A program made the position numbers and the translations under genes. A stretch of DNA of 64,000 bases from Octopus sinensis (Eukaryota): NCBI RefSeq assembly GCF_006345805.1, contig NW_021833757.1:1-64000 (forward strand), read 5' to 3'. Shown piece after piece: positions 9,256 to 57,053 of this stretch; positions within the stretch are counted from its first letter, which is position 1, and the number at the start of each line of letters is the position of its first letter. The notes beneath the pieces are model-generated. The model was given only the letters and a program-made list of their open reading frames with translations, searched no databases and was not told the origin of the DNA.

Positions 9256-10648
9256 CAGGGATTATGGCTTCAACCGACAAAATCCAAACTGTACAGGCAG
9301 TTCTTCCTTTCATTTTTAAAGCCAAACTACTGAGGGCGTCGTTATTTCGATCTTCAATTCACAAATTTTTTCAAAATTCGTGAAATAATATTTCGCTGCT
9401 TTAACCCAACTTCCCCATCTGCATAAATTAAGAAAAAGAATACCTAGTAATTACGACATCAGGTGGGTATCCAACATCCTTGAACAAATTACGACGTCTT
9501 CGGTTTTTTACTGTGGCAGCTTTAATGCTTGCAATTAAGCCATCTATTTCCGGATATGCAGACTTTATACGTAAAACCGTATTGTGTAACAAATGAGAAA
9601 CATAAGTCAAATGATGCATGTTGTTATACATGACCATTAAAGTTTTATCGCCTATTTATTTAGATACTTTTATATCACCAGAAATCATATAAGGAGCGGC
9701 ATCTGAGATTAACAGATAAAAATTGTCACGAATAATCTTCATTTTTCTAATGACGTCATCTATTATTTGGCAGATGATAGCAACATTGGCATGATTTTCC
9801 AGTGGTTTGCATTCAACCAAATAGGATTTTGTTGGAAAGCGAATGCTTCCAATTAGAATCACTACAAAACTTTTCCTTCGGATATCTGTTTCATCAATTA
9901 TTATAAAAATCTTTTCGTTTCTAAAAGTTAAAAAATAAACTTTAATACGTTAATCATTTTTCCAACTCATTTATCTTTTTTGTGCAAGAAATTTAACCGT
10001 AGTTCTGCATGAAAATTCGGACGGAGTGTTAATGTTAAATGTTTTAAACATTTTTTTGATCGAATCATTTTTTAATTTGTATAGCGGGATGTTTGCTTAT
10101 ACAAAAGCTTCCGTGATCGTTTCTTTAACCGAATCTACTTTGATTGATTCAGTTAATGTTGTTTGAACTGAATCACATGAATGACCTACAATTGTATTAC
10201 ATTTATACGAATATTGTTCTGATGTTTTAAAGAAGAACGATGAGAATCGACTGAAAATGTTTTTGCACAGTTGACTTTGGATAAACAAAGAGAACAAAAT
10301 AGAAGGCCATCGTCAGCAATACAGAACTCATCTTTGAATTCTGAGACTATACGCTTGGCTTTCTTAAGCAACGAACACTTGGGTTTTGGCATCACTCAAA
10401 ATACTATATAGCGTGCTAAATTATTTTATTTAAATTAATTTATTATCATTTTATGGGTGGCATTAAAAAAATTTTAATGCAATTTAAATTAGCATTAAAA
10501 AAATTAGCATTTAAAATTAAAAATAGCATTTATAGCATTTATAATGTATGTTTTTTTAACAAAATTAAAAAATAATTATTCCAAATTCAATTTTATATTA
10601 AATAAATATAAAAAGTAAAAATAGCATTTTAGCACTTAAATTGCCCTA
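9256..10648 (-). mobile_element. hAT-type transposon with CGGBP1-like N-terminal zinc finger, degenerate, two tiny introns
   Basis: LFCSLC..KVNC..HRSSLKH, SDAAPYM and TR|WGSW motifs. TAGGG and CCCTG ends with subterminal aaatgcta repeats. Introns 9652-9678 (27 nt) and 9419-9443 (25 nt) restore the frame. Confidence 0.8.
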
Positions 10649-11132
10649 GATATTAAGAAATGACACAAATATTAACATTCTTTCTTCTACCACTAATATT
10701 CAATTGTGTAATTAATTTAGCCATTTCCGTTATTAAATTCTTTGTCCGTCAATTCGATTTTTTCCAAAGTACAATTTTTTGCCTAAATTTTTATTCAAAC
10801 CTTCCTACGCATTTAAGTTAGCGACTTGGTCCAAGATACCCGAACATAGTGTATTAGTGTATTCCAAAGGAACTTCATCATCAGTATTGCTAAAACCACC
10901 AGAGGACCAAGGCTATGTGCCGACTGAGTAATTCTTATATTATTTATACAAGCTTGCAATGAGTCAAATGTGGGGACAACGTGATATGCTGAGATATCAG
11001 GAAATGACACAAATATGACCATTCTTTGTGTATTATTAATATTCATCATCCTAATTAATTAAAATATTTATATTCTCAACTAAGAAATTATCTCCCGAAT
11101 AGTGAGGTGTTCCTTCGAGGCGAGTGATCTCG

Positions 11133-12296
11133 TCAGTAAGAAGGAAAATGTATAATGGACAGTCCTCCCATGTCCTGAAGACTCTGCTTTAAACTCTGTG
11201 AAAGATATTTGAGGAATAGATGGGCGGATCCCTTGTCGAGGACTGTGCCGGAAACCCCCTGAGCCACTTGAATGGAGGACCCGTGGCTAAGATGAGTAAT
11301 ACCCCAACCATAAATATCGAGCCTGGACATCCTTGGTCAACTCCATGGCGTCGAGTGACCCCATTCCGCGATAAGGCCTCACTTTGACGTCGTTGATGAG
11401 GGCAGACTCGATGGGGGATTCGGAGGTGGCAGCAAACATGGATCCCATCATGACTAGTGCATGTAGCTGAATGGGGTACCTGTGGAGGCTCCCAGGGCAA
11501 TTGCCTTGGCGATGTGTCCCGGGGACTGGACTCCCCCATCGGCAATGACTGGCACTCCGAATTGTCTGGCCAACTGACTGACGTGGTACACAGCACTGGC
11601 CTGTCCTCGACCAACAGCCATGACTGGGGGATTAGTGGGTGACTGACCTTCCTGAGTGATACAAATAGATCCCGACCAGTGCAACCAGACAGTCCTCTTT
11701 GTCGACGATTGGGAGTTTCCCTTTCTTTACATTTCGGAGGGTCTTGTAGGCGTCTTGGAAGTTGATCCCGTCGTTAGAAGTGACCAATGACTCTCCGGGG
11801 GTCATCACCTGCAGTGACAAGTCGAGGCAAACCACTTCCATCCATGTCTGGTCGGACACACAGCACAAATCAATGTCCCGTTGAGTCACCAGGCCCAACA
11901 ACCGTCCATTAAGTGTCACCGGGAAGCCAGAAAAGCCATGTTTATTGACCAGGATTTTGTAATCTGCCACAGTAGTGCTGGGGGAGACGACAACTGGGTT
12001 CATAATGAAGCCCTGTTTGGAGGATTTGACTAGTCGGACATGACTGGCTTGTTCCTCGGGCAGACAGTTGTTGTGGATTATGCCTATGCCCCCCTCCAAC
12101 TACCAATGTCGGTCAGTCAATACGCCATGGCGATTGCCATTCGGGACTCTGTCACCGTGTCCATTGGGGTTGATACGAATGGGCAATTTAGGACTATTTT
12201 TTTGATTAAATTGGTTTTCAAGTTCTGAAATGACACTTTAGACATACCACTTGGTCTGCCGCAAAGTCGATGTAGCCGGGGAGAATGATCAAGTCA
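11133..12296 (-). pseudogene. IMPDH: IMP dehydrogenase pseudogene (exon 1 lost, ~100-aa internal deletion, six tiny introns)
   Basis: [25 protein letters not shown], two CBS domains, SGSICITQE with the catalytic Cys, IADGG, YRGMGS and VAQGVSG. The TIM-barrel segment between LVAL and SGSIC is missing. Confidence 0.95.
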
Positions 12297-12305
12297 CTAC
12301 TCATT

Positions 12306-13395
12306 AGGTTAGTTCTCTACTTGTAGGACAGGCTGTACACTGATGAAAATATTTTGCCTTCTCCATAAAAATTCTATAAATGTATTAAGAGTATTTAATA
12401 CCTGCAAAATATGCACCCATGAAGTGACGTCCCCCTTTGTCTCTTATTGCGCCATTTTGCGCACCCCCACATTCTATATTTTCATAATTATTATCTGAAC
12501 CTCTCAACATTCTGTGCACCTGTGCTCGGATCTACAAAATTTCGTCTGCAAATTTATAAACGAATTATGGCCAACTGTAAGGTGCACATAAGCAAGAGCA
12601 TTGAGATCTGGCGTTGAATAACCTATTAGCAAGAATATAGTAGAATTACCCTTCCATTTGTCAGTGTGTATCACTGATCCCGGTGCGATATTTTCCTGTA
12701 TTGCGGCGGTTAGAGTTCTTTTGGAGCGATCTGGAACCATCTTGATGAAACAGTCTTTACTTCCACGACAGATTCCCTCAAACACCCATTGTTGAGGGAG
12801 AATCTGCATTGTTTTTCCGTTTAGAAAACATGCATTTGTCAACTTGGACAACTTTGCCAATACCACCTAACAATCTAACACTAATACCAATCAGTGTGTT
12901 CGGACGATTTGCTAAATAATATGCGCAAACCTGGGAGTGAGACAAATTAAGAATTGTATGGCTGCTCCATTCCAGTTGACGCCGACACCACAAAATACTG
13001 TCGAAACTCCACATGTACATAAAGCATGACTGTAAGCTCACTTTCGTGCCTTCGAGCCACGTACCTAAAAATAAAGTACTCTCTTATACCGTTTCTAATA
13101 GAACTAAATGTTCGACACCCACTTTTATAGCACACCCATGTTGTATTCTCCTGCTGTTGGAGAAGGGTCATAAAATGTCTGTTTTGACATTTTTTTCTTT
13201 GGGAAAGATTCCAACCTCTTGAAGGAAGGCAACTGACTCCATTTCAGTACGGGAAGTTCATAGTCCTTCAGTTTTGCAAATTTTCGCATGTCAACTGTAT
13301 CATTCATCTCCACAAGCCGGTAAAAAATTCAAATTTTTTACAAAAAATTGAATACAATTTACAAATTCGGCATAGTTCAATTTTTTAAATTTTCC
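12306..13395 (-). mobile_element. Merlin (ISXO2/IS1595-like) DNA transposon, degenerate, two tiny introns
   Basis: SIRNG|TWLEG, VQVD, QWVF.GICR, TDKWKG|Y and QNVE motifs. Introns 13065-13089 (25 nt) and 12623-12649 (27 nt). Begins GGAAAATTT; the 3' TIR was not found. Confidence 0.85.
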
Positions 13396-13399
13396 TCAA

Positions 13400-15339: not shown

Positions 15340-15590
15340 AGAGGTTGCGCTTTTTGGCCAAAGAAGAAAAGGAACTTAAACTAAAATTACTATGTGATCT
15401 CAAAATGCGTTCAGTGTCAGGTGCGTATTTATTAAATTATTTGTAGTCAAAAAGATGATGGTAACTAAGTCAACAAGTACTCCTATTATTGCAAGAAGGT
15501 CTAAAGATCGCTATATTGCAGATTCAGTGGATTTAAGAAAGTATACCAGCCTTAATAGTGATAATGGATGGGTATTCATTTCTGAATAAA
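15340..15590 (+). mobile_element. Ginger-like integrase remnant with a 26-nt intron
   Basis: CVQCQ|...PIIARRSKDRYIADSVDLRKY..N...W. GT-AG intron 15421-15446 and a 1-bp frameshift just after it. Confidence 0.65.
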
Positions 15591-15639
15591 TTGTAGTTGG
15601 TTGTGGTTATAAATTCATTAAAAATACAATGGGAGAAAA

Positions 15640-16030
15640 CCGAGACCGAAAGAGGCGAAACAAAACAACCTAAGCCAATCGGATACTAAAGCATTATCAA
15701 TTGCGGTGGACAAGGAGGAAACTGCAAAGATACGCGCAGCTTTTGGGATTCTGGATGAAATTTGCCGGAACGGCAGAAGAGCTTGATCGATTAAAAAACT
15801 TCCTCGGCAGAAGGGGATGTTGCGAATGGCACTTTTTCGAGGATTTCTTGCGGGCTGGAACACTGAACCGGCTGGCAAGTGCGGCAGGAAGGACAGTTCC
15901 AAATTAAAAGAGAGGCAGAAACGCGCCTGGAAAAGTGCACACAAGAAAGGTGGAAGAATCTGTCACAGCTAGAACAGACTCTCCCTTTCTTGCGGTTGTT
16001 ACTAACTTTGCAAGAAAAGCATAAAACCGT
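15640..16030 (-). mobile_element. 5' part of a CRE-like element with a PHD finger
   Basis: CFSC-x11-CSSC-x4-HLSC...WNCPSC, then RIPKAARI...W.RL, as in the N-termini at 36100 and 43409. Confidence 0.8.
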
Positions 16031-16639
16031 AGTAGGTTGGCGACAGAGAGACATAAAAAAAGAGCGAGACAGGTACAATAAAAAAATAGACTGACAAAGA
16101 TAAATGAGAAGAAAAAGAAAAGAAAAGGAACAAAAGAAAAAGAATTGAAATGAGAGAAAGATAGATGGATAGATATATGGATAGATAGATGGATAGATAT
16201 TAGGAATGAAATTAAAAACGTCACAAGAAACGACACGACACGTGGAATAGTTAAATTATAATTAGATTTTTGTAGGTGTTTATTTTACATTTAAAAAATC
16301 TTTTCATTAACAATCTGATCAAACTTAAAGAGCTTGCATATATAGATTAAATTTTGTGCGATAGAATAATAATCAATCGAAAACAATGTATGCAGGTCAA
16401 TTTCCGAAATGTAATATCCGGATCTCAAACTGCAAAGAATAGCACTAACCAAAATTCAAAAGCACGTTTACATAAATTTATTATTTTATTTTTCTCAAAA
16501 TACTTTAATGAAATACTGTAATAAAGTAATTTAGGCGATTTCTCATCTTTGAATAATAAAGAGTTTAATTCTGATTGTTTAAAAATCAATTAAAAATTGC
16601 TTATAATTATTATATATTCAAGGAGAAACGATCAAAGAG

Positions 16640-18229: not shown

Positions 18230-18370
18230 TAGGGTGTAATTGAGCGCTTTAATCAAACACTAACACGGGGTATGGAAAAACTGATAGATAATAAAAATTG
18301 AAAAAATTTTTAGACAAAGTTACGTTTTTATAATACGACACATCACTCGGCGATAAATGAGACTTTCTTC
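18230..18370 (+). mobile_element. Ginger-like integrase remnant
   Basis: GVIERFNQTLTR...YNTTHHS. Confidence 0.65.
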
Positions 18371-18769
18371 AAAAAGTATAGAGATATTTCTGAAATTAAA
18401 CGTGCCATTCGTGAAATATTAGGTTATAATCTCACTTTTAATTTAGATGAAAATAATGAGGCCTCGTTTGTAGTAGATAAACTTGATGGAAAATATACGA
18501 TGCATTTAGCTTTTCACTTCCATACTTGAGTAGCTTCTATTACAAAATAACAGTGCATTATTCAAATAATTAATTTAAAGTTAGTAAGTTGGTTTAGGAG
18601 TTTATGCAGTCTTGCGAATCATAAATCCACCAAATGAAATAATAGCTTTCTGAGTTAATTCTTTTAATTCGTCGTCATTTCCAATTGCAACGACAACGTG
18701 ACGTGATTTAATTCTTCTTTTTCCACATTTTACTGCTGTATTTCCAGCCAAACGCTAAAAATCAAGAAA

Positions 18770-21484: not shown

Positions 21485-22205
21485 TTTTTTTTTTTGAATA
21501 ATTTAATTTAATTGTACAATATAATTAATAGAGAATTAATGTCGTGAACTTGAGGGTTAGTCCGACGACGAAGCACTGCGGATAGAGAGGCAGTTCCCGC
21601 GAAGAATTGCAACCGAGATGCGCTGGAAAAGCCAGCTCGTCTCCCTCCGGTTATTTGTATTCTGTGAGATTCTTCCTCCCACAACCCGTAACAGATTTTC
21701 TACCTTCTTTCCAACCACACCGGAGGTCTCAAAGGCTAGGGGGACAAACTCAACGACGTTCGGAAGCACAGCGTACTTCGTCAACTTCCTTTCTTCTGCC
21801 AGCGCACATGCGTAGCCTGGTGTACTGGCTGTTCCTGTGAGCACAGTATCTGAAAAGGAGTCGACGCAAGTTACATCCCAAACAAGAGACCTTCCTCCTC
21901 TAAAGGGGAATATAGTCATCCCGTCAGGACGCTTTCCGTCACTGCGGCAGAGCCCAATAGGTTCAAGGGTCGATGGGAATCCCGCAGAATCCAAAGCCCT
22001 TTTCACCACTTCATTGAGGAGGACGTGGCGGGGAAATCGGCCAGCACTCCTCCTACAGGACAATGCGTGTAAACCGTTCGAAGGAATCAAAAAACCACAG
22101 CGACAACGGTGAGGTTGGCAGATTTCAAGTCCAAGTCGAAGACACACTCCGATACGTATAGTTTCGTCTTCCATAAGCAGACCATTGGACGCCAACGGAA
22201 GTGCG
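21485..22205 (-). mobile_element. 5'-truncated CRE-like insertion
   Basis: RLE ORF 21557-22195. Poly(A) tail and TSD tttttataaa(tt) at 21473-21484 and 22206-22217. Confidence 0.92.
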
Positions 22206-22439: not shown

Positions 22440-23484
22440 TAAGTCGAATTGAATTTCTTTAGTCGCCTTGAATGAACTTTCCTAATAGACCCAGCACTAT
22501 CTTCGACTTGGACAAAATTGTTGGACAATTTTTTGACAATAGTTACTGGATCCCCATACGGATGTTCAAATTTCTTTAATAGAAGAGAAGGATTCGTCCC
22601 ATAATCTTTTTTTATACGAACCTTTAAGTAATTAAGAATGGAATACAATATCTCCAACATCTAACTCATATTTTGATCGATGGACTCCCATCTTCCTATT
22701 CATTCTTCTATAATATGAAGACTGCAAATTCATCCTCTTAAAATTAAACTGGTACTCATCATCTTTACTAATAAATAACAATAAAAAACCTTTATTATAA
22801 ATGTCAGGATTTTCTACAACTTCCAATTCTTCCATATCAAAACTTTTTGGATTTTCCTCAACACCTGATTCAACAACAGTGTTGAATCCAGGAATACCAC
22901 GATATCTTTGGAATGGACTAACGCCTAGAAAATAAAAAAATGCAATTTACATGTCGATGAATGAGCTCTCTGATTGTATAAAAACACAGCCTTTCGAATG
23001 TGTTTTATCCACTCTTTTTTATCATCAGAAGCCATCAATTTGGATAAACTCCTTGTGATTGTCTGATTAAATCTTTCAACTATCCCCTGACTCTGAGGAT
23101 TGTTCGGCCTTCCATGTATTTGATTAATTTTGAATTCTTCACATAAATTTGAAATATGAATATTTTTAAATTCTGTCCCGTTATCAGATTGCAAATATCT
23201 GCAGGGGCCATAATCCATGAAAATGTCGTTTAATTTTTCAGCGACTTCAATTCCACTTTTATTTCTAAGATTCCTTGTGATGGCATATCTCGAATAGACG
23301 TCAATAACAGTCAACAACCAAGAAAATTGATCATTATCATTTACAAACCTTGGGAATAAGACAATTTTATACCTTTTTAGGTCAATCAGATCAATCTGAA
23401 ATCTCTCATTCGGTACATCCGCAAAAATATGACTTACGTCGTCATATTGTTTCAGTGGGACTGCAGACTGGCATATATATTGTT
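22440..23484 (-). mobile_element. Ginger2/KRBA2-like DDE integrase with a 24-nt intron, degenerate 3' part
   Basis: PNERFQIDLID, IDVYSRY, LQSDNGTEF and PQSQGIVERFN. No RT, RNase H or LTR nearby. In-frame GT-AG insert at 23349-23372. Confidence 0.85.
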
Positions 23485-23876
23485 CCAGGAATCCTATCAA
23501 TAGTTCCATATTTTTTGAATTTTCGAAGAAAATCTCCGATTGTCGATTTTGGAGTATTTAGATGATCTGCGATATCTTTTATCGTTCAATTTAACTCATA
23601 AAGAGCAAGAATCTTCCCTTTAATTATTTTATTTAACATTTGCTTATAAAACTAAAAATTCAACTACTAAAATATCACTCAATAATGCAAACCGGTTTTT
23701 TATTCACTCGCTAAAATTTAAATCTTCAGAATTTTAAACGATTAATGGAATTTTTTATAAATAAAAAAATTATAAATCTAATCAATTACAAAGAGTTCAA
23801 TTCAGTTAAAAAAAATAAATGCCATCCGCCAAAAAAAGTTAGTAACTGCAAAACCGGTTTTTTTCTACCAGCACTG
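23485..23876 (-). mobile_element. Left-end fragment of the same Tc1 family
   Basis: Near-identical to 6809-7200 inverted. TIR end followed by TA. Broken within the transposase and joined to the integrase. Confidence 0.92.
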
Positions 23877-26859: not shown

Positions 26860-27040
26860 GAAAAAGAAAACAGCATCTCAGAAGGCTCGATTTTTTGCCA
26901 AAAAATTTCCCGAATTTGTTATTAATCCGGAAGGGAAATTATTTTGTTCTTATTGTTCTACAATCGTAAGATGCGATAAGAAATTTTCTGTTGACGCCCA
27001 TCGTTTATCAAAAAAACACGTTCAAACACAAAGTATATGA
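26860..27040 (+). mobile_element. CGGBP1-like hAT N-terminal fragment
   Basis: KLFCSYCSTIVRCDKKFSVDAHRLSKKH. Confidence 0.7.
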
Positions 27041-40735: not shown

Positions 40736-40744
40736 TAATAGTAG

Positions 40745-41906: not shown

Positions 41907-42389
41907 CGAGATCACTCGCCTCGAAGGAACACCTCACTATTCGGGAGATAATTTCTTAGTTGAGAATATAAATATTTTAATTAATTAGGATGATGAATAT
42001 TAATAATACACAAAGAATGGTCATATTTGTGTCATTTCCTGATATCTCAGCATATCACGTTGTCCCCACATTTGACTCATTGCAAGCTTGTATAAATAAT
42101 ATAAGAATTACTCAGTCGGCACATAGCCTTGGTTTTCTGGTGGTTTTAGCAATACTGATGATGAAGTTCCTTTGGAATACACTAATACACTATGTTCGGG
42201 TATCTTGGACCAAGTCGCTAACTTAAATGCGTAGGAAGGTTTGAATAAAAATTTAGGCAAAAAATTGTACTTTGGAAAAAATCGAATTGACGGACAAAGA
42301 ATTTAATAACGGAAATGGCTAAATTAATTACACATTGAATATTAGTGGTAGAAGAAAGAATGTTAATATTTGTGTCATTTCTTAATATC

Positions 42390-45300
42390 TAGGGCAATTT
42401 AAGTGCTAAAATGCTATTTTTACTTTTTATTTATTTAATATAAAATTGAATTTGGAATAATTATTTTTTAATTGTTAAAAAAACATACATTATAAATGCT
42501 ATAAATGCTATTTTTAATTTAAATGCTAATTTTTTTAATGCTAATTTAAATTGCATTAAAATTTTTTTAATGCCACCCATAAAATGATAATAAATTAATT
42601 TAAATAAAATAATTTAGCACGCTATATAGTATTTTGAGTGATGCCAAAACCCAAGTGTTCGTTGCTTAAGAAAGCCAAGCGTATAGTCTCAGAATTCAAA
42701 GATGAGTTCTGTATTGCTGACGATGGCCTTCTATTTTGTTCTCTTTGTTTATCCAAAGTCAACTGTGCAAAAACATTTTCAGTCGATTCTCATCGTTCTT
42801 CTTTAAAACATCAGAACAATATGCGTATAAATGTAATACAATTGTAGGTCATTCATGTGATTCAGTTCAAACAACATTAACTGAATCAATCAAAGTAGAT
42901 TCGGTTAAAGAAACGATCACGGAAGCTTTTGTATAAGCAAACATCCCGCTATACAAATTAAAAAATGATTCGATCAAAAAAATGTTTAAAACATTTAACA
43001 TTAACACTCCGTCCGAATTTTCATGCAGAACTACGGTTAAATTTCTTGCACAAAAAAGATAAATGAGTTGGAAAAATGATTAACGTTAAAGTTTATTTTT
43101 TAACTTTAGAAACGAAAAGATTTTTATAATAATTGATGAAACAGATATCCGAAGGAAAAGTTTGTAGTGATTCTAATTGGAAGCATTCGCTTTCCAACAA
43201 AATCCTATTTGGTTGAATGCAAACCACTGGAAAATCATGCCAATGTTGCTATCATCTGCCAAATAATAGATGACGTCATTAGAAAAATGAAGATTATTCG
43301 TGACAATTTTTATCTGTAATCTCAGATGCCGCTCCTTATATGATTTCTGGTGATATAAAAGTAAAAAACAGCTGTTCTTCTTGTGGTGAGGTGAGTGAGC
43401 GAAATATAATGAAAGAAGAAGACTCCAAGACGATGGAAACTCTTCGGATAGTTGGGAGGGATCCCTCTATCTGTTATGGGTGTAATAAGATCAACACCAG
43501 GAAATGTGGCGTTTACTGCTCAATGTGTAATAAATTCTGGCATATTAGCTGCGCGCACCTTACCAAAGCCGCAGTGAAATTACTCCGGCGCTGGAGCTGC
43601 CACTGTTGTATGGCTTTACTCCGAATCTCGGCTTCGCAGCATCAGTCTCCTTCGCTTCATGAACCCAAATCAGAACACTATATTCTCAAAATTTCCAACT
43701 TACGGAAATCTAAGAAGATACCTTTACGTATCCCTAAACAGGCTCGGATCTCAGCGGCAAACTGCTTGTGCGATCTTATCACTGATGCGCTAAGCTCCGG
43801 GGGGGACCATTCTTGGATCCGTCTCCTCTCTTTTGCACCTTGTGTGTTTGGACAAGCAATTGATGGTTCAGTACAAAAGAAGAGTCTCTCGGCTGCCATT
43901 AAGTCGAACTCTGCGAGATTGGATGTCTCATGGATTGATTTCGATTGTGAAGCGACCAATTTCCAAACGTGCATCACGGAAAAATCCCCCCAGTGGTTCA
44001 AAACCCAAGTTAGTCGTAAACTCATGGATGGCGACATCCGTGCGGCAGTTCGGGTCCTTTCGTCCGCTGATTCACTTGCTGAATCTACTGCCGAGACTTT
44101 GGAACACCTCAAAAACAAACATCCGATGCCCCCAGATGACTTACGGGAGTTTCCCACACGAGACAATGCAATTATACTGTCAATTTCTGATGATGAAATT
44201 TTGGAAGGGATTAAATCTTTCAGACCGAGTAGCAGTGGGGGATTTGATGGTCTCCGGCCGAGTCATATAAAGGACATGATTTCCCGATTGACTATGGAGA
44301 CTGGAATCCGCCTGATCAAGTGTATTACCAAGCTTGTCGAACGGATTGTCAATGCTGAGATTTCAGGCTTTGCAAGGGATCTACTTTTCTGTTCACACCT
44401 TATTGCTTTCCGAAAGAACGATGGAGGAGTCCGCCCCATTGCAGTCGGTAATGTCTTCCGGAGGCTCGCATGCAAAATTGCAGCCCGAAGAGTCTGTCCC
44501 CGTGTTGCCGCTGAATTATCTCCAGTCCAACTGGGAGTTGGTGTTTCCAACGGATGTGAAGCTGCTGTCCACGCGACAAGAGCTTTTTTTTCACCTGACA
44601 CAAGACATTCCCCAAATTCCTTTGCGGTGAAGCTGGATATCTCAAACGCGTTCAACAGTCTGAGAAGGGACTGTATGGAATCGTGCTCGCAGCGTACCCC
44701 AGAGATCATGAGTCTGGCTCACCTTGCTTACGGGTCCGAAAGTTCGCTTGTCTTTGACAAACACATTGTCCGTTCACGGACTGGAGTCCAACAAGGTGAC
44801 CCTCTTGGCCCTTACTATTCGCTCTGTCAATCGACGAGGTGGCTCGTAATGTAAAGACACCTCTCAACCTTTGGTACCTTGACGATGCCACTATTGGTGG
44901 CCCTGTTGATGTCGTCTTGGATGAGTTATATAAAATTGTTCCTGCCCTGGCAAAAATGGGGCTGATAATCAACACCAAAAAACTGAGATCATAAATATCT
45001 CAGTCCCAATTCAAGACTTTGGCTTAGTAATGGAAAAGATTTCAGAAATCTTGCCAGACACAAAACAAACACGCCTCAACGATGTTTATTTTCTTGGGTG
45101 TCCTTTCGGAGAGTCCGAAGTGCAAAACCACCTCAGAGCTAAGAGTGTCGAAATGTCCCGTTTTACTGAACGCCTCTCTCTACTCGACTCCCACACGGCC
45201 TTTTTCCTCCTCAAAAATTGCATCCACGTGCCCAAACTGTTATATTTATTGAGATGCTCGCCCTGCTTTATACAAGATGAAATATTGCATTCTATCGATG

Positions 45301-46804
45301 ATACGTTAAGATTGTGTGCCGAGTGGATCCTAAATGTCCGTTTCGATAATGATGGGTGGACCCAGTGTAAACTACCTCTTAATTCTGGCGGAGCTGGCCT
45401 AAGATCCGCCCTGGACCTTGCCCTCCCAGCTTTCCTGTCCTCTCACTCATCCTGCCGAAGGCTATCCTTGGAGATTCTACATAAATCCCCCGAATCTTCT
45501 TGGACAGGCCTTTTGAAGATGGATGTATGCTGTGGAAGGAATCAGGATTAAAATTCCCGATCCAACATCACTCCAACAGAGCTGGGACAAATTACGCTGC
45601 GAATTCACCGCAGACAACCTGGCAATGAGGCTCGACCAGCACCGCCTCGCCTGCTTACGCTCTGCAGCTGTGCCACACAGTGGGTCATGGCTGAATGCTA
45701 TGCCAATTGCTGGCCTCGGAACATTATTAGAGGATGACTGCATGCGTATCGGTACTGCACTGAGACTCGGACTTGACATCTGCGAACAACATCGTTGTAG
45801 ATGTGGAAAAATGGTTGACGTCAAAGGTGTACACCCACTCTCTTGCAAACGAAGTGCTGGCCGAGCTCCTCGGCACTCCGCTATTAACAATGTTATCTTA
45901 AGAGCTCTTGAGTCGGCGGGCTTCCCCTCGATCCTAGAGCCAGTGGGCTTAGATCGTGGAGATGGGAAAAGACCCGATGGAATGACCACTTTTCCCTACT
46001 CCTGTGGAAAATCGTTGGTTTGGGATTCAACGTGTGTTGACACCCATTCCAAAACTAATATGATCTCTTCTGCTGTTTCTCCAGGTTCTGCAGCAGATGC
46101 TGCAGAGCAAAGAAAAATTGCCAAATACGCAAATCTTGGACAACGGTACCGCTTCGTACCTATCGCTGTGGAGACTTCTGGGGTAACCGGCCCTCTTACG
46201 ACTTCTTTCATCAGAGAAGTCGGAGGAAAAGTTGCTAGGCGACGTGGGAGCCTCGAGAAGTGTCATGGTTATTCCAACAAATTGGAATAGCTGTCGTTCG
46301 CGGCAATGCACACTCCATCATGCGTGCAACCGCAAGTGCCTTTTAATCATTGACTAACTTATTTCAAAATTAAAAAAAAAAAAAAAAAAAAAATATAAAA
46401 GTATTAAATAAATAGGCGATAAAACTTTAAGGGTCATGTATAACAACGGCATCATTTGACTTAGTTTTCTAATGTTACACAATACGGTTTACGTATAAAG
46501 TCTGCATATTCCGGAAAAGATGGCCTAATTGCAAGCATTAAAGCTGCCACAGTAAAAAACCGAAGACGGTCGTAATTTGTTCAAGGATGTTGGATACCCA
46601 CCTGATGTCGTAATTACTAGGTATTCTTTTTCTTAATTTATGCAGATGGGGAAGTTGGGTTAAAGCAGCGAAATATTATTTCACGAATTTTGAAAAAATT
46701 TGTGATTGAAGATCGAAATAACGACGCCCTCAGTAGTTTGGCTTTAAAAATGAAAGGAAGAACTGCCTGTACAGTTTGGATTTGTCGTTGAAGCCATAAT
46801 CCTG
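42390..46804 (+). mobile_element. Arm-2 copy of the hAT element, interrupted by a CRE-like insertion
   Basis: Matches 9256-10648 inverted. The insertion lies inside the 27-nt intron. The second intron is at 46621-46645. Confidence 0.8.
43364..46392 (+). mobile_element. Apparently full-length CRE-like retrotransposon (PHD-RT-RLE), arm-2 specific
   Basis: TSD atataaaagta (43353-43363 and 46393-46403) and ~22-nt poly(A). ATG at 43409, C4HC3 PHD finger, RT with WYLDD, and RLE. Several 1-bp frameshifts. Confidence 0.94.
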
Positions 46805-49300
46805 TACAAATTAATTTATTGGACATTTTCAAATTTTATTTTGAGTTTTTCGTGGTTTTAGTTCTATTAATTCTTATTGACATTCATCGTCAGAATTTAG
46901 ATTATTTAATTTCATTAGAAATTATTCCAATTTCAGAATATAGGCTAAGAATATTGAACCAAATTGCAGGAGACTCAAAAAAGGTTTTCACACCACAAAT
47001 TTAATGCGATTTGTTAACCGGGTTGAAAGGTATGATCCCCGAGTTACTCGTGGAGAGGACCTTTATGATTTTTGATTTAACAAATAAGATTTGTTCTGTT
47101 TCCCATAACATGATTACAATTATTATATACAAAATTTTGATAAGATGCAACTTTAATTTCAAAATTGTAAATTTGAAATTTTCAAGTGCAATTAGAAGTT
47201 TTTAATTGACAAATTTCAAGTTCATAATTGACGTAAAAATGCTAAGACTGCGCGTTGACATGAATCTGCATATCCGTGCACTGGACGTCAGCCCTAAGAG
47301 GGTGTGGTTGATGGAATAAAACACCACAAATCACGAAAGGGAATAAACTATTAATATATCTTGTTTTGAGTTATACAAACTTTTATTTCAAAAATCGGCA
47401 AATAATAGAATTTACCCAATAATAGAATAAGTAATTTGTAGTAAGAATTTGAACGTAAATATTATTAGAAATCTTCGATTGTCCACATTCAATTCACATG
47501 AATTAAGGTACATACTAATTATTTAATAATTCAAAAATATAACAGAATAAATAAGGAGCTCAAAATACGCTACGTCGTCTGTAGTAAGGGAATCGAAATA
47601 TAAAAATGTTTGTTTATGTTGAGATAGCGATAATTGAATGATTTAAATGAAATAAAAATATATATCCAAAAAGTATTAAATGGTTAAGATGAAAAAAAGA
47701 TTAAATTATTGTCGAAATATCACCAAATTAATTACAAAATGTCGAATATTATACGAAATTATGTAATTCAACAATATATTTAACCAATTTTAATACAAAT
47801 ATTAACTATTAATGAAAAAAATATAATTTGACTAAAAAATTAAAACAACAAAATACATTATGCAGTAACGTGCTATCTAAACATCAGAATTTTAAAATTA
47901 AATAAGTATACTAAAACGAATTTTTAATTATAATATAATTAATTTTTTTTTGAATGTATAAATAATAATCTGTCCCCTCTCCTGCCGCCGGAGCGCAGGC
48001 CGCTAGCCTCGCTACGGAGCAATCAACGACGTAATCTCAAAAGCATTCAATGCTGCTGGCTTCCCCAATGTGCTAATATCCGCTGGATTGAACAGAGGAG
48101 ACGGCAAACGGCCGAATGGGGTGACTACCTCCCCATTCCGAAATGGCAATTACCTCATCTGGGATGCCACGTGTTTAGACACGTGGTCCCCATCCGCCAT
48201 ATTGTCATCTGCATATTCTTCCAGCTCGGCCGTTGCTTTGGCGGAAGCCCCGCAAAGTCAAAAGTACAAGAATTTTGCCTTGACTGTTCAAAAAGTTAAA
48301 GACAAAGTATTGTGGCTGATAAAATTGCAGGAGTAATTAATTAATGTGTTTATTGCCAGGTAAATTTTAATTCTATAATGCTAGACTAAAAAATTAATGG
48401 CGACTAAGCCGAAAATAACGTAAATCATCGCACGTAGGGCTAGAGATAGATGTCTCGCAGATCTCATTGATCTTTGCAGATATTCTGAATTTAACGATAA
48501 ATTCTCTTGGGTATTTTGGATGAAATTATTAATTTAAAGATTTTTGTAATAGTTGATTCCTTTTCAAAATATGTAGTCGAATTATCAAATTTGAAATTAG
48601 CGGTAATAATGTAGCTAATCTTTTCCAAAATGTTTTTTATTATATCGGACCACTAATCATCCTCCATACAGAAAATGGTAAATAATTTTGTAATTCTTAA
48701 ATCTACGAAGTCTGTGAAAAATATTTAATCGAGCATTGCGTAATAGGTCAAGTAGAGAGGTTACCAGTTGACTTTAATTTATAAAGGTTCAACCAAAGCA
48801 TAAAAGGGGGATATCTTCAGCAAGTGTCTTTCGTGGATATTTTGGCCGATATTGTTTATGATTACAATAATACCATACGCTTAAAACCGGAAAAGTTTCG
48901 TTCCGAAGAGGCGACATAAGTCGAGATGCAAGCATCTTACGACTTCATTGTGTCTCTTCGTGTACTCACAATTCAATATTCTGTTGCATCGTGTAGCGAG
49001 GTGGTCGACTGACTTCTTAGCCAGTTTGTAGTGAGGACAATATACATCTAGTTCTGACCAGAACAGATTTTTATCTTGCAGTAAGCAATATAGACCCTCA
49101 CTCCTTGGGCTTATATTGTCTTTCTGCAACCACAAAGAGGATTCTTTAATATCGGAATGAATGTTTTTGTTGCATTTGTAAAGTGATGAATGTAAACTTT
49201 TCGTTTCGATTATATCAATGAAGTATTTGAGTTGAATTTCCTTTAAATTTTTTTACGTTGATTTCATTGTTATATTTGGTGTATTTATGCTTTAAGTAGT

Positions 49301-49320
49301 CTAACCCTAACCCTAACCCT
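49301..49320 (-). repeat. Arm-2 copy of the interstitial telomeric repeat
   Basis: ctaaccctaaccctaaccct. Confidence 0.85.
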
Positions 49321-50193
49321 CATTCACAGCAATGATTTTTATAGGAGCTATGTTGCTGGTGTGCTCCTCACTAGTAGGACCTGTTGCAGCATCTCAGGTT
49401 CCAAACGGTGAATCCAGCTGACTCGTCTGCGAACCAAAATTTTTTGACTAAAGGACCCGGACTTCTGCAACGTTATTTGGGTTTTTAAGCATTCGGCGAT
49501 TTCGACAGGAGGTTAAACCTATTGATCTTTCTCTGGATTCCTTTCCTGTTTCATCTGTACCGAGTTTCTTTTCGGGATCTTTGTTAATGAAGTCTTTTCC
49601 AGTCTCTATGTTTCTGAGTTTCTTTCCAAACTTGTTGACTTTTACCTTGAAATAATCATCGTATTACTGACGCAAGTCAATTGATGTTATTTAATTTTTT
49701 CATTCTTTTCATAAGTGTCTTCTTTGTGGTTTCATAGTCCATTTGAACTTTGATCATATTATGCGAGAGGATTTCAGTTCTGGAAAGCAACGTCTTTGAC
49801 AGGGAAATCACACATTTCACGCGCCAAATGAGAGACCTACCTTTCCTGTCATCCCTTCGGAACATTTTTTCATTATCTCTAAAAAGACTAACCGGTTCCA
49901 AGATAGACGGGAATCCCGCGGAATCGAATGCCCTCTTAATGACTTCATCTTTAATAAAAAATACCAAAAATTGATACTTCTTCAGATTAATCAAATCCAT
50001 CTGGAATCTTTCATTTGGACCAGTGATTCTCAAGTGTGCGGTCTTTGGATTCAATTATGTCCCGTTGTAAACTTTTAGTTTGTCTTTTTTAATATAAATA
50101 AATTTTATTTTTATTCTACTTTGTATTAATTTTTTTGTTTAATTGGATTCAGAAAGAATATTTCGTGATGCAGTTTCTTTTAATGATTAATTT

Positions 50194-50864
50194 TTTTTTT
50201 AAATAATAGTTTGTTAAACAAGAAAGAAATTAAAGATAGCTAAGTTAATTAAAGGCCTCACGAGACACCCGATAGCCTCGCGAATGGCGAAGCCGTTCCC
50301 TCGGATCACAGCAATCGACAGACGTTCCAGGAGCCAAGAAAACTCTCTTGGATCGTGACTAGTCCTTGAAATCAGTCGACCGAGCGAGCGAAGGAAGCGG
50401 AGTGTCTTGGGGCCGAAGATCCCGGAGGACTCCACGGCAATTGGAGTAAAGAGCAGCGAGTTGGAGAGGTGGCCGTACTTGAGAATCTTTCGCTCCTCGG
50501 CCTGCCTCGAAGCGTGCCCAGGATTGGCGGCGGACAGAGCGAGATTTCCCAGCGAGAACGTGTCCGAACAGGTAGAATCCCAAATAAGGGATTTCCCCTG
50601 CTCGTATGGGAAGGTGGACATGCCGTCAGGCGTTTGCCATCCCCTCTATCCAATCCAACAGGTTCAAGGATTGACGGGATGCCTGCTAAAGCGAGGGCTC
50701 TCTGTATGACTGAGTTGAGTTCATTGTGATGGGGGGCACGACCGGCACTCCGCCGGCAAGCGAGGGGATGCAAACCGTACTCGTCAACAGTTCCCCCACA
50801 ACGGCATTTGTGCGTCTGGCAGATTTTCAGCCCGACACGGAGGGAGATTGCAATTCTTAGGCAC
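50194..50864 (-). mobile_element. Arm-2 copy of the 5'-truncated CRE-like insertion
   Basis: Same sequence and TSD (50184-50193 and 50865-50874). One 1-bp deletion near the RPDG motif. Confidence 0.92.
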
Positions 50865-51967
50865 TGATTAATTTATCTGAAATTTCATCATTTTTGAAAT
50901 ATTTTTTGATTTTATTTCTCTAATCTGCTTTCTTCACTTTTGAAATTTTTCGATTTTATTTTTTTAATCTTCTTTTTTTAATTTGTTTGAAATTTAATTT
51001 AGTTGATTGATTATTCCATGGAGTGATATTATATATGCAGGTATAATATAAGAAAATCCTCCCGTAAATCGGTCAGTCCGTGCTGTTTCTTTAATCGCAT
51101 TTGGGCTACTCTTATAGCCTCACTCTGGGTTGTAAATATTTCGGAGTAATTGGAAATCATTATAAAAGAAAATACTGGATGTTTATTCAATTTAATACCG
51201 TGCTTTCTCCGGACCCAATTTTTGCAACTTATCTTGTATAGGTTACAATAGTGTATAAATCTATTTCAAACGTATAGATTCCTCCATTGTAAACATGTAC
51301 AAGAATTACGATCGATAATTGTTCTAGGAGTATAAAATTTGATAATATTCCGTTTATAAAATTATTCAAATCATCGGGTTCCTATTACAAGACAGTCTAG
51401 AAAACAAATCAATTCAAAAAGTACGAAAAATAACGACAAATTTCTTGTTCCAGGAAATAAAACATTCATGTTTTCAGAAAAACCAATGAACCAATTTTTG
51501 CTTCAAGCGAAATGTCAGCGTCCACTTGTTTGAGTAAATCGATATTTATTATCTTGTATGTTCAAAAAATTCTCAGTAACCTCCTCCAGCACCAAAGTTC
51601 AAAATCATCAATTTTTTGTTTACTGCATTTTGTCTTTAAGAAATATCCTTGTTTTCCATATACTGTTTATATTTAGGATAGCACTCGCCAAATGATAATT
51701 TGCTTCTTGATTTCCAAACTTCTGTCAGCATTCCAATTAATTAGGCATCTAGGGAGACAACGTTCTAGTGAAACGAAAAATATTCAATTTTACCTGAAAT
51801 TCAGACATTTCCCGCTATTTTTATTGATTAAAAAACCCTAAATATGTAACGAATTAAAATTTCATCAGCCATTTGCTAGACACGTGAACCAGCGCAATAT
51901 AACAACTATAAAAGCCTTGTCCTTAATATTAGTCGAAAATGTTATTCGGTCGTATATAGCAAACCTC

Positions 51968-52616
51968 ATGGTTTATCGAGATGTAATCGTGGCTGCAAAT
52001 TACCTTTTCTTAATGAACAAGTTCATAAATCGTCGATTGGATTCCTATTTTTGTAATAACAATTTTGTTCATCCAAATATCTCAAACAAGGTAGAACAAA
52101 TTATTTTTACTTCCAGACTGAGAAATGTCCACAGTCTAATAACAACTTCAGCATAGAGAGCATTTTGGGAACTAATTCTACCATTCCCTCCGTCTACTCT
52201 TCCAACAGTGACCCACTCAATCTCCTCTTTTTGGCTTCTACTGAACCCAAAATAGTCAACCAAGGAAACCAGAGTATAGAAAAAACTCAGGAAAAAAATA
52301 TAAGAGTTCGAAAATTTGTTTGCAACTACGAAAACTGCGGAAAAGCCTATTTCAAGAATTCTCACTTAAAGACTCATTATCGGAAGCACACGGGTAAAAA
52401 GCATAAATAACCATAATAGGTGAGAAACCATACAAATGCAATTTTGAAAATTGTAGCAGATGTTTCTCGCGGTCAGATGAACTGGGGAGACACCGACGCA
52501 TGCACACGGGAGAAAGGAACTATACATGCCCTTACTGCCAGCGGAAATACATTCGCTCTGACCATCTATCCAAACACGTTCAAAACAAACACATTAAAAA
52601 CAAAAAAAATAAATAA
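51968..52616 (+). CDS. KLF: KLF9/13-like, second intact copy
   Basis: Introns 52091-52116 and 52394-52419 (26 nt each). Differs from the first copy by an in-frame 3-nt deletion near the start and a few substitutions. Confidence 0.92.
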
Positions 52617-54479
52617 AAACTTTTCAATATTCCATTTATAAATAATTTTTAAATTTTTTGATAATTTTCATCACGTGAACTCTGATTTGAGCACCTGAAA
52701 ATTCTTGGGCGGGGATGTGGTTAATAGGTTGATATAGTATTCAAATTAATTTATAAAAATCGTGATGTACACGTGTAATACGTGGTTTAGATAAATTGTA
52801 CTTGAAAGGGTGACCCAAATAGTTTGAGATTCAATTGAATAATTTATTATAAGAAAAGGTTTGACGCATTTTTAATTGAAAAATAATTTCTCCCAACAAA
52901 TTCAATATCATTATAGTCTCAATCCTCAGATTTTACAAAAACATAACAATTGGGATTAAAAAACCAACTAATTGATTAATTGTACAAAAAATAAAATCAA
53001 ACATATTTTTGAAGACCAAACCATCTCCAGTCACAAGTGTATAAATAAATTTATGTGTAATTGAGCACTTTAATCAGACATTGACACGAGGTATGGGGAA
53101 ACTCATGGAAATAACAATTAAAAACAATTTTTTGACTAAGTAATTTTTTATGATACGACAAATCACTTGGCAATCTTTTTTCAACAAGGTTTTTTAACAT
53201 CTGCTCCTACTACATATTAAATATTTTCAATTGGATTAGCCATTGGACTGTATGGAGCCAATTTTCTTAAATTTATGAATCTTAAATTCTTCTTTTAATA
53301 AAATTTCTTCAATACGAGATTTGCAGGGGTGTTATACAAGTAAAAATTCGACCACTCTTCTGTAGATATTGCTTGTCAAAAGAAGATTCGAGGGATTTAT
53401 GTAGAATCTCCAAGACAGCCTTCGGTAGCATGAGTGAGAAGATGTGAAAGCCGGGGGGCGGGGAAGTTTTAGGGCAGATCTTAGGCCATCTCTGCCAGTA
53501 CATTGTCCAGTATCATTATTGAACCAAATGTTTTGGATCGTCTCAACACACAATTTTAACGTATTATCAATAGAATGCACTATTTCATTTTGACACTCTT
53601 AGTCCGGAGGTGGTTTTGCAATTCGGACTCCCCAAAAGTACACCTGAAAAAATAAACATTATTGAGGTGTGTTTGTTTTCTGCCTGCCAAGATTCCTAAA
53701 ATATTCTCTATTCTAAGCAAGTCTTGTATTGGGACTGAGATATTCTTGATCTCAGTTTGTTGTGTTGACTATCAGTCCTATTGTTGAAAAGGCACTAACA
53801 ATTTTAGATAGCTCATCCATGTAATACATTTATATTTTAAGAAATGAGACAAAGTGCAGCTAGCAAGAATATTTAATCCCCTTCTAATGGCCTTTATATA
53901 ACTCTCACAATGTTCCTAGTTAGCAATAAACAACCAAACACTCAAATTTGATAGAATCTGTGCAGTGTTCTTTCAAAAGAGCCAAAAAATATAATTAAAA
54001 ATCCTCAAACTTTGTTTTTTTGAACAGGTAATGTATAATCTTCAATTGTTAGAATGTCTACACCAATAAAATAATATTTCGAGGCGACAGAAATTACAAG
54101 ATCTCTACCGTGAGCCAAATTGAAATCGAACTGGCTTGGACACTGGATATAAGGTCGATTATAGGAACTACGTCTGAGATCTATCCAACTCTATCCCAGC
54201 AATTAAGAATCGCATCAATAGTAGACCAATCTAATTTTATATTATTTTCAACTAAAAATGTTTTGTTGTAATTTTATGTCGTAAAATTTCAAATTTCACT
54301 GTTTCATTGTAACCAACCAATAAAATGCACTTTTTCAAACATTCTCATTGGGAATCCACTTCGAAGAGTCAATGCTAGTTTTAACATTTTATTTATTATT
54401 AAGACATTAGAATAATAATAAACAAACATTGGTTAATCTAAATTTTTTAATTAAAATAAAATAACTGTTCTAAATACAG

Positions 54480-54645
54480 CTTGTCACATTCATCGATTCC
54501 GTTGTGGAAAGCTATTTTTGCCATACGAAACCCACGGTATCTAGTGCTGCATGAGTGCCGGAAGAATCCTTCAGCAATTGTCTAGTAACGATTTTATCCA
54601 AAGAGCTCTCTGGTAGGTTGGTTTTCCATCAATACTGTATCCACT
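54480..54645 (+). mobile_element. Old CRE-like RLE remnant
   Basis: HRFRCG...HGI*CCMSAGR...NDFIQRAL..GFPSIL.P. Confidence 0.6.
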
Positions 54646-55199
54646 GGACCCGAAAGGTTGGCCGATGTCGGTTAATATTAATATATTAACAATTATATTT
54701 TCCATTCGTCTTGTTAACGTAAGTTTATCACCAATTCTCTACCAAGAAATATATAGCGGACCACTAGCTCTCCTTTGGGTATGGTTGGGGTAGTTAAACA
54801 CCTTTACCGGGTGTTTGGTTCATTCCACAACGCCAGTCATGCTTACCATAATTGGTCCACTTGGTACTGTAATTTTACATGTGCCTACAATCAAGTGAGT
54901 CACATATCTCAAAGTTTGAGAATATTATGCACCCATTCTGAGCACAGATATCTAATCATTGGCTTTAACATATGAAACTTTTTTACGAACACCGCCTATC
55001 ATGAGAGAAATTTTTAAATCCAGGTAGTTTCACTATTTCGCGTGGTAATACAGTAATCTCCTTCTATTATGAATTACTTATACGCAAAGTATCAGTTATT
55101 GTAAATGTACCGAATTTAATTCCCATAGTCTATAAATCTTTTACCAACTTACTTTTAATAATTTTCGTTAAAAAATCCACTTACATTATTAACATTCGT

Positions 55200-55445
55200 T
55201 TCGCAGAAAAAAAAATCTGCTTCTAAACTTGCAAAGCATTTCAATTCTTTGATTGGAAATTTTTTCAAAAAGAACCATCGGCACTAATCAGAAAGACAAA
55301 GAAATATATTCAAAAGTGTGCCAAAAAACCTATATTTGTCCAAAAAATAAAAATGTTTTGTTCTATCCAAAAAATTATTGCAGTATTCGCAAAATCATGG
55401 AAGTCGACTATTTTTACGGACGAATGCTGTTTTGAAATCTTTGTT
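55200..55445 (+). mobile_element. Tc1-family transposase remnant
   Basis: WKSTIFTDECCFEIF resembles WKTIIFSDEASFQIF of 7046. Confidence 0.6.
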
Positions 55446-55730
55446 TATTTGATTAACCAATGTTTGTTTATTAAAAAAATTATGCTATTGAAAAATAATA
55501 CACGTCTAAAAATCGCATTTATCTCCAATTGTAAAATTTGGAGGAGTGAGACTTATGCCGTGGGGTTGTTTCAGCTATTACGGACTACGAAATTTAGCAA
55601 TTCTAAACAGTAAGATGAAGATCTAATAAGGAAACTCATCAAGAGCATCCCAAAAATATCCAGTGATGTTGTATTTGCAAAAAAAGATTAAATCTTTAAA
55701 CAATTTATTCAGATTTGCATTTGTCATAAC

Positions 55731-57053
55731 TAGGGATGATAAAGTTAATAAAGTTAAATTTTAATATTTTAAATAAAAATTAAATAAAAACTGTTTTTAT
55801 ATTATTTTTAAACGTTCTATCTTTATATTTTAAAAAATTATAAAGTTAAAAAGTTAAAAAAATAAATCGTAAGGTTAAATTTTTTTAACTTTATTTTATT
55901 TAATTATTTCAACAAATTATTATTATACGATTAAATAAATATTAAACAGCGTGTAAATTACAAGTTTTTGTTGTATGCAGCGTACTTCTAAGTCTTATCT
56001 AACTAAAGCAAAATTAATTGTCAACGAATTCCCAAAGGAATTTCAGTTAAATAACAACGATGAATTGTTTTGTAAACTATGCTTAACAACATAAAGTGCT
56101 CGAAAAAGCATTTTGTTAACCTCCACAGGATATCAAAGAAACATAAGACTTTAGTTGGTAAGGATTTTTCGATAATATATCTTTTTCATGTTAATTGCGT
56201 TACCCATATTTTGCATAATTGTTCAATGGAGGTCAGAAAATCTTATCCAGAAGTTGATGATGTGATAGCTAGCGTGCATGCTTCTGTCAGGAAGAACCAC
56301 AAGCGAAAATTGTTGTTTTACGAAATTGGAATTCCTCCGAAAGTTGTGTTGACGAGATGGGGCACCTGGTTAAAGGCTGCATCTTTTTATTCAAGAAATT
56401 TAATCTCAGTGATTAACATTTTTGATTTGATTGAGGACGAAGGAATACTAGTGACTGCCACCAAAAATGCATTGAAAAGTGAAAAACTAGTAAAAAGCTT
56501 ATGTGCAATTTCGCATAACTATTCACATATTCCAGGTTTTTCATATAGTAATTAATCTCATAGAGAAAATATTACAACTTGAAAGTAACGAATGTACAAT
56601 AGAATTTGCATATTCGACGTTAAGTACACTTGACTTGTGGAATGATGAAGCAGGGATCAAAAAATATTTAGAGAAGAGAATTTTAGAGAGCGATATGACT
56701 AAAATTATTAATATGGATAATAAAAATATCTCTCCGGAAGATTATTCGTTACTTCAAAATTGTCAACCATCCTCGGCATCTATCGAACGATGCTTTTCGC
56801 AATTTAGGAGTTTTATGAGGGCATACAGAAACTTTGCTACACAAAATTTGGAAAATTATGTTATGTCCATTTTCAATAAATAGTCTTTAAAGTATTTTAT
56901 TGTTTCTTATTTATACTTTACAGGTTTAACCTGAGAATAAATAAAGTTTAATTTTTTTAATTTTAAGGTTAAAAATTTTGGTTTATAGGTTAATAAAGTT
57001 AACTTTTTAAGGTTAAATTTTTCAATTTTTAAGGTTAAAAAATGTTGGCCCTA
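55731..57053 (+). mobile_element. Internally deleted hAT element (CGGBP1-like) with 8-bp TSD and a 28-nt intron
   Basis: TAGGG...CCCTA ends and TSD gtcataac (55723-55730 and 57054-57061). ATG at 55975, LFCKLC, HVNCVTHILH, TRWGTW and SASIERCFS. Intron 56536-56563 joins two ORFs. Confidence 0.9.

Follow-up and report, generated by a model that had tools for sequence, protein, structure and literature searches.

Probable ultra-short GT-AG introns, sized like those of the host, in Merlin, hAT, and integrase-type DNA transposons

The first 64,000 nt of contig NW_021833757.1 from the Octopus sinensis assembly GCF_006345805.1 (hereafter, the window) consist for the most part of nested transposable elements (TEs), and the transposase and integrase genes of several DNA elements among them are interrupted by a total of about 15 segments of 16 to 28 nt (mostly 21 to 28 nt) that begin with GT and end with AG. 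The segments are spread over six elements: six in a Merlin-type transposase gene, four in a hAT element which we call the arm hAT, one each in two further hAT elements (hAT2 and hAT3), two in integrase 1, and one in integrase 2. We conclude that they are most probably spliceosomal introns of the ordinary U2 type with GT-AG ends, carried by DNA transposons that have long been resident: Merlin, three or more hAT families, and a family of stand-alone integrases. Seven of these segments had been listed in an earlier reading of the letters (the original prediction), and all seven were recovered at the same positions and on the same strands; about eight more were found here. The prediction that DNA transposons of three superfamilies carry GT-AG introns of host size was likewise borne out, as the one host gene available for comparison, IMPDH, has introns of 22 to 26 nt.

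To obtain this set, coding regions were aligned to homologous transposases and integrases with a splice-aware profile-to-DNA aligner in which both frameshifts and GT-AG introns of whatever phase are permitted. The window has a GC content of 37.3%, and its TE content comprises multiple reverse-transcriptase (RT) open reading frames (ORFs) and one Tc1 element in addition to the Merlin, hAT, and integrase-type elements. Part of it is an inverted duplication with 13-kb arms (~92 to 13253 and 39793 to 54206; 98 to 100% identity) and a 26-kb spacer. The arms include Merlin, the IMPDH fragment, the arm hAT, and more, and because Merlin and the arm hAT both sit in the duplication, each is present in two copies. 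Arm-to-arm comparison gave ~50 changes in 3.6 kb, many of which are 1-nt indels, some of them in homopolymers; some of the lesions described below may therefore be assembly errors.

The IMPDH gene fragment (40750 to 42100, plus strand; other copy at ~10900 to 12290) served as our host-gene yardstick. Its five introns lie at 40794-40816 (23 nt), 40917-40940 (24 nt, off by one nt), 41392-41415 (24 nt; the left-arm counterpart at 11624-11647 is canonical), 41560-41585 (26 nt), and 41731-41752 (22 nt), and a single indel between the arms makes a 24-nt IMPDH intron that is canonical in the left arm look off by one in the right arm. The fragment lacks the first ~30 residues and, at an out-of-frame junction, ~125 internal residues, and it has kept all five introns; it is a pseudogene or captured fragment and not a processed copy. 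Its top matches are animal enzymes, lophotrochozoan and chordate, with 53 to 62% identity, and an animal-like IMPDH with introns of 22 to 26 nt indicates that the host is an animal having ultra-short introns. We considered a ciliate origin of the window and ruled it out, since ORFs of 842, 764, and 583 codons exist under the standard genetic code (table 1) only and the IMPDH is animal-like.

The Merlin-type transposase gene of the right arm (39747 to 40733, plus strand; DDE_Tnp_IS1595) was assigned to its family by a match to PF12762 (E = 1.3e-9) and by IS1595-type homologues that are 38 to 42% identical, and its introns were judged by alignment to four IS1595-type transposases. Excision of intron 1 (39957-39981; 25 nt, phase 1) joins SIRNG to TWLEG and so gives the GTWLE motif that is invariant in 4/4 homologues. 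Introns 2 (40159-40179; 21 nt, phase 1; new to this analysis) and 3 (40394-40420; 27 nt, phase 1) are both in frame and free of stops; the former is a 7-residue insertion relative to the homologues, and the latter is a 9-residue insertion that no homologue has and whose removal gives W-x-x-Y. A fourth candidate (40482-40497; 16 nt, phase 2) gives HNS-R-NFVDP upon excision; it is doubtful for its length and may be a shortened intron of a dead copy. Intron 5 (40543-40569; 27 nt, phase 2) holds the stops TAA TAA, and its excision gives VER/MWGCAKWRNK, comparable to IE..W..AK of the homologues, while excision of intron 6 (40641-40668; 28 nt, phase 1) gives the EFLWRRQ motif, after which the frame is open to the stop codon at 40733. 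The seemingly decayed 3' half of the gene hence reads through the catalytic E..W and EF.WR once its introns are excised, and just two lesions are left: one nucleotide is missing from an A7 run near 39850, and there is a short indel close to 40239. Permitting GT-AG introns raised the alignment score from 190 to 327. The left-arm gene (12310 to 13310, minus strand) has the same six introns, at 13065-13089, 12867-12887, 12623-12649, 12546-12561, 12474-12500, and 12374-12401. A scan of the flanks of Merlin for terminal inverted repeats (TIRs) and a target site duplication (TSD) found neither, and the IMPDH fragment starts ~20 nt beyond the Merlin stop codon.

The left-arm copy of the arm hAT (8760 to 10648, minus strand; ATG at 10392) encodes a DUF659-type hAT transposase. 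Its 5' TIR, TAGGGCAATTTAAGTGC, is at 10648-10632; a 3' TIR was searched for and not found. Homology is clear to ~9355 and fades beyond that point, and in-frame stops are present. We compared it with 11 DUF659-type transposases, 7 of which are collinear across more than 90% of the query. Its placement in the hAT class is based on full-length collinearity with DUF659-type transposases of 456 to 464 aa (E down to 3e-96), the C-terminal dimerisation region included; against Pfam alone, the DUF659 score was below cutoff. Permitting GT-AG introns raised the alignment score from 350 to 540, with four introns called. Intron a (10186-10208; 23 nt, phase 1, at profile residue 62; right-arm counterpart at 42825-42847), new to this analysis, restores the frame after KHQNNIR when removed. 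Intron b is located within 9921 to 9966, where the gene has a 9-residue excess over its homologues and two GT-AG placements are possible. Intron c (9652-9678; 27 nt, phase 1, at profile residue 221) holds a TAA, and excision gives LLISDAAPYMIS/GDKTL (PYMIS/G); intron d (9419-9443; 25 nt, phase 2; right-arm counterpart at 46621-46645) gives VVITR/WGSW (TR/WG). Across introns c and d, the spliced protein aligns without a gap to all 11 transposases.

A third hAT family, hAT3, is represented by a 5' fragment (26864 to 27075, plus strand) that is truncated at ~27075 by a 3' piece of Tc1. It contains a 23-nt GT-AG intron (27033-27055) at the same position and in the same phase as arm hAT intron a, and its excision gives the conserved QTF(L/I). 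As the arm hAT and hAT3 proteins are only ~35% identical, the intron common to these divergent families must be older than their split. In the right arm only, a poly(A)-tailed non-long-terminal-repeat (non-LTR) retrotransposon (~43363 to 46393, plus strand), with a TSD of ~10 bp (ATATAAAAGT), sits inside the 27-nt intron c. Adjoining this insertion of a long interspersed nuclear element (LINE), at 46400-46570, 1-nt indels and substitutions between the arms are densely clustered, which reflects either poorly polished assembly or insertion-linked mutation.

The element hAT2 (55731 to 57053, plus strand) is an internally deleted hAT with TIRs TAGGG...CCCTA, flanked at 55723-55730 and 57054-57061 by a perfect 8-bp TSD, GTCATAAC. 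The TIRs and the perfect TSD mean that it has moved as DNA, and it is a bona fide non-autonomous hAT element. Its coding sequence (55975-56883, plus strand) has one TAA and one frameshift in an A5 run and is interrupted by intron e (56536-56563; 28 nt, phase 1), whose excision gives HIP/EKILQLES followed by the hAT C-terminal domain, gapless against the homologues; the alignment score rose from 362 to 433 with GT-AG introns permitted. As the original prediction had it, the TR/WG intron of the arm hAT (intron d) is missing here, and TRWG is uninterrupted. The part that hAT2 has lost is profile residues ~63 to 220, that is, the exons lying between arm hAT introns a and c. The deletion joins profile position ~61/62 to ~221/222. 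To within a codon at either end, these are the positions of the intron a donor and the intron c acceptor, and both introns are in phase 1; by a rough estimate, the chance of both breakpoints coinciding with splice sites is ~4e-4. Like internally deleted elements of the Ds and KP type, hAT2 keeps its TIRs, N-terminal zinc finger, and C-terminal hAT domain and is without the catalytic middle. In the classical deletion derivatives, breakpoints arise from abortive gap repair. Those of Ds- and KP-type elements are not bound to exon borders, whereas the ends of the hAT2 deletion each lie no more than one codon from a splice site. A search for DNA similarity between the arm hAT and hAT2 found none. 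Downstream of hAT2 are an Exo_endo_phos (AP-endonuclease) ORF (57574-58071, plus strand) and an RT ORF (58644-59177, plus strand), which come from a different, L1-like LINE.

Integrase 1 (22450 to 23485, minus strand) has an rve core (E = 5.5e-14) and a C-terminal domain. In an exhaustive HMMER search for integrase homologues, its closest relatives were stand-alone integrases of ~420 to 460 aa, and the best 20 relatives are likewise stand-alone, at ~400 to 600 aa; polyproteins ranked lower, at ~30% identity. Intron 1 (23349-23372; 24 nt, phase 2) is in frame and stop-free and amounts to an 8-residue insertion relative to 19/19 best homologues, and intron 2 (22925-22950; 26 nt, phase 1), new to this analysis, accounts for the stop that ends the integrase 1 ORF; its excision gives AHSSTC/VSPFQRYRGIPGFNT. 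With GT-AG introns permitted, the alignment score rose from 365 to 437. Integrase 2 is a fragment (15394 to 15580, plus strand) that spans C-x2-C to the first catalytic D. The segment originally proposed in it does have GT and AG ends at 15421-15446, but the aligner favors a donor 4 nt downstream; the best call (15425-15446; 22 nt, phase 1) requires no frameshift, and the one that had been assumed just after the intron is dropped. Integrase 2 does not have the intron of integrase 1, in agreement with the claim that the two differ in their intron sites. Both copies are truncated fragments flanked by unrelated TEs, and the Ginger-type label given to them from their sequence is putative. The 5' end of integrase 1 is truncated by an adjoining 285-nt 5' piece of Tc1 (23485-23769; 98% identical to 6916-7200, inverted), and further integrase fragments were seen at 57118-57394, 18233-18388, and 5683-6199.

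The Tc1 element and the retroelements had been reported to be intronless, and this proved correct. Tc1 (6806 to 8272, plus strand; ~190-nt inverted ends) has a single transposase frame of 335 codons (7046-8053) with one TAA and no introns, and the RT ORFs of the window are continuous and without introns. One split RT ORF, at 29821/29902 in the element at 28151-31478, was considered as an intron and rejected, as it is a 1-nt frameshift with no added sequence. Three non-LTR ORFs, at 21557-22195 (minus strand), 38300-38913 (plus strand), and 45523-46290 (plus strand), have a common C-terminal domain (C..C...H...C, RH, RPDG...WDVT) with no Pfam match. This domain resembles a restriction-like endonuclease of the PD-(D/E)xK kind, and the elements would on that account belong with the site-specific R2/NeSL type; one of their 3' fragments adjoins integrase 1. 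PHD-finger and C2H2 zinc-finger ORFs are also present, at 15794-16255 (minus strand) and 2166-2513 (minus strand), in stretches that are otherwise unannotated.

Taken as a set, all 15 candidates have GT and AG ends on the coding strand, and among the first ten, 8 start with GTA and the mean GC content is 23%, compared with 37% for the window. Their lengths fit those of the IMPDH introns. Wherever, in the three alignments, the window copies alone have an insertion of at least 7 residues, a GT-AG segment is found at that spot, and the spliced products are gapless over the invariant motifs GTWLE, E..W, EF.WR, PYMIS-GK, TRWG, and DLxDL..W. Alignment to homologous transposases thus upheld the restoration of frame or motif that had been claimed for six of the seven introns first noted. 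To judge how often this would arise by chance, we compared the GT-AG excision at each of 12 sites with 399 alternative excisions (starts up to 9 nt to either side, lengths from 15 to 35 nt). It was best or joint best of 399 at the invariant-motif junctions of Merlin introns 1 and 5 and hAT intron d and in the top few per cent at most other sites, the linker around hAT intron a being too variable to discriminate; Fisher's combined p was ~1e-5 after correction for the count of GT-AG placements per site. Phase 0 is not represented among the 15 TE introns (10 are in phase 1 and 5 in phase 2), whereas two of the five IMPDH introns have it. At the exon flanks of the ten TE introns tested, 8 are preceded by G and 5 are followed by GT, whereas 0/5 in IMPDH are followed by G. 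We looked for similarity between introns and flanking exons, a signal of tandem duplication, and found none. Several exons have same-phase introns on both sides, which together with stop-free introns would permit alternative products, a matter of compatibility only.

Several points weigh against reading these segments as introns. The 16-nt candidate in Merlin falls outside the length range of the IMPDH introns. Intron a of the arm hAT lies in a variable linker, where support from frame and collinearity is weak, and intron b is ambiguous between 9921-9948 (28 nt, with a 1-nt shift in an A run) and 9940-9966 (27 nt). Three introns have lengths divisible by three and hold no stop, and these could be read through as short peptide insertions. 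When the aligner was run with 45 other dinucleotide pairs, much of the score gain was regained; GT-AG still ranked 1/46 (469 versus 417 for the best control), and since AT-rich pairs abound around the true sites, this control is not clean. Lastly, all copies in the window are disabled by stops, small indels, truncations, or nested insertions, and intron boundaries were deduced from such pseudogene copies at the sequence level.

The most skeptical explanation denies that the segments are introns and takes them for GT..AG strings due to chance, for random insertions, or for errors of assembly within decayed pseudogenes. The copies do bear real lesions, the arms differ by many 1-nt indels, some homopolymeric, and a GT..AG pair of any one length occurs at ~0.26% of positions; but some 15 sites in five independent elements, all GT-AG, all 16 to 28 nt, and all restoring a frame or motif, are a poor fit to such an origin, the diverged arm copies have the same introns, and with a combined p of ~1e-5 we regard it as very improbable. 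Spliceosomal introns of resident elements would account for the same observations as follows. Cut-and-paste elements are copied as DNA, and their introns therefore pass to every copy; retroelements are intronless because they go through spliced RNA. Over a long residence in an ultra-short-intron host, the elements would acquire the host's intron architecture, and they would converge on host intron size because they depend on the host spliceosome, for which lengths of mostly 21 to 28 nt with minimal GTA...AG signals would be what it handles. The introns would then have been spliced while the elements were active, and where copies differ in intron position, introns would have turned over within TE lineages; at least one such difference is probably a loss via a spliced RNA intermediate.

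How the differences between copies arose can be explained in more than one way. The original prediction held that minimal introns are gained de novo, and repeatedly, by the transposases of this genome, and that they may serve as a license for expression or as a splice-based switch for transposition. A comparison with homologues from elsewhere, which it had called for, showed that the closest are uninterrupted ORFs at every intron position (of these homologues, P0010 comes from a genomic contig of 1.5 Mb and P0136 from a contig of an NCBI assembly), so the introns are peculiar to the lineages seen here; some of the homologue contigs may nonetheless be transcripts and not genomic DNA, those of P0006 and P0002 bearing no mark of either kind. 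Gain would also fit the variation of intron positions between copies, the G before 8/10 introns and the GT after 5/10, as expected at (A)G/GT proto-splice sites, and the lack of phase 0, unlike the host gene. Intron a, however, is common to the arm hAT and hAT3 and implied in the hAT2 ancestor, and is thus old in this hAT clade; the TR/WG difference is better explained by loss; the flank-duplication signal is absent; and all copies are dead. Repeated gain in this genome is not borne out by these comparisons, and we consider it, and the licensing role attached to it, unlikely. The alternative is that intron content differs between copies mostly through RNA-mediated loss. On this view, hAT2 derives from a hAT with introns, and a transcript of that element, partly spliced and with exons skipped, was turned into cDNA and written back into the element, either through gene conversion or by serving as a template for repair; such copy-back would remove introns a to d plus exons 2 and 3, and intron e would stay as an intron that had not been spliced. 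That hAT2 has moved as DNA, that its deletion ends match the intron a donor and the intron c acceptor, that neighboring intron d is missing too, and that reverse transcriptases are plentiful in the window all speak for this account. It is nevertheless one case, spotted post hoc; the arm hAT and hAT2 are different families without DNA similarity, so the hAT2 ancestor need not have shared these introns; and classical cDNA-mediated loss favors 3' introns, yet hAT2 keeps its 3'-most intron. We therefore put it forward tentatively, as a serious possibility that stops short of being the probable one. It is possible but doubtful that matters go further still, with fast, RNA-run intron turnover in these DNA transposons, an uptake by hAT2 of its own exon-skipped transcript, and a distinct, recent gain of tiny introns marked by the lack of phase 0 and the (A)G/GT flanks; if true, these families would offer a natural setting in which to catch minimal introns being gained and lost.

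Apart from these questions of origin, introns of resident DNA transposons have clear precedents. They are well known from Ac, P, CACTA, and Ginger, and the exon/intron structure of CACTA elements has been shaped mainly by intron loss (PMC4158355). Like Ac/hAT (4 introns), the P element (3), CACTA, and Ginger, the window elements have transposase genes interrupted by GT-AG introns that travel with the DNA, and in the known elements, as in the window, intron number and position differ among families. The window elements differ in the size of their introns, which at 16 to 28 nt are under the ~30-nt limit long assumed for animals, and in the density of up to six introns in less than 1 kb in the Merlin copy; moreover, splicing of the P element is regulated, whereas the window elements are known from sequence alone. 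In Paramecium, where host introns are ~25 nt, one report describes predicted introns in the ORFs of the germline Tc1/mariner transposons Sardine, Thon, and Anchois, including the DDE transposase (PMC3464196). That host, however, is a ciliate whose genetic code is an alternative one and whose DNA undergoes programmed elimination, whereas the window host is an animal using the standard code; and while Tc1/mariner elements bear predicted introns in Paramecium, Tc1 is the one without introns in the window.

The only animals named in the literature as having ultra-short introns are dicyemids and myxobolid myxozoans, whose host-gene introns have medians of 22 to 27 nt and signals pared down to a 5' GTa, which is also how 8/10 of the window introns counted above begin, and a 3' AG (PMC13644364). 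With 37.3% GC and a high repeat load, the window matches the genome of Dicyema japonicum (36.7% GC, 49% repeats; PMC6736024). Reports on dicyemids and myxobolids cover host genes (PMC6736024, PMC13644364), whereas the introns described here are in transposons, and the word stem "transpos" occurs nowhere in the main text of the Dicyema genome paper (PMC6736024). We found no description in the literature of ultra-short introns in transposons of dicyemids or myxobolids; the feature is one to be expected and, to that extent, an undescribed one for such hosts.

By the usual limit of ~30 nt, introns shorter than this should not be spliced in most animals (PMC13644364), and the elements are in effect tied to this host; being locked to it by their tiny introns argues for long vertical residence and not for recent horizontal arrival. 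In animals with introns of 20 to 30 nt, standard TE annotation sees transposase genes such as that of Merlin as frameshifted wrecks, and the age and activity of TEs in dicyemid or myxozoan genomes may accordingly be underestimated. The points most worth attention are the exon-shaped deletion of hAT2 and the absence of phase 0 from all 15 TE introns. Together with the differences in intron content between TE families, the hAT2 deletion provides, for a lineage whose intron biology has just begun to be described, countable cases of intron loss and, possibly, of intron gain.

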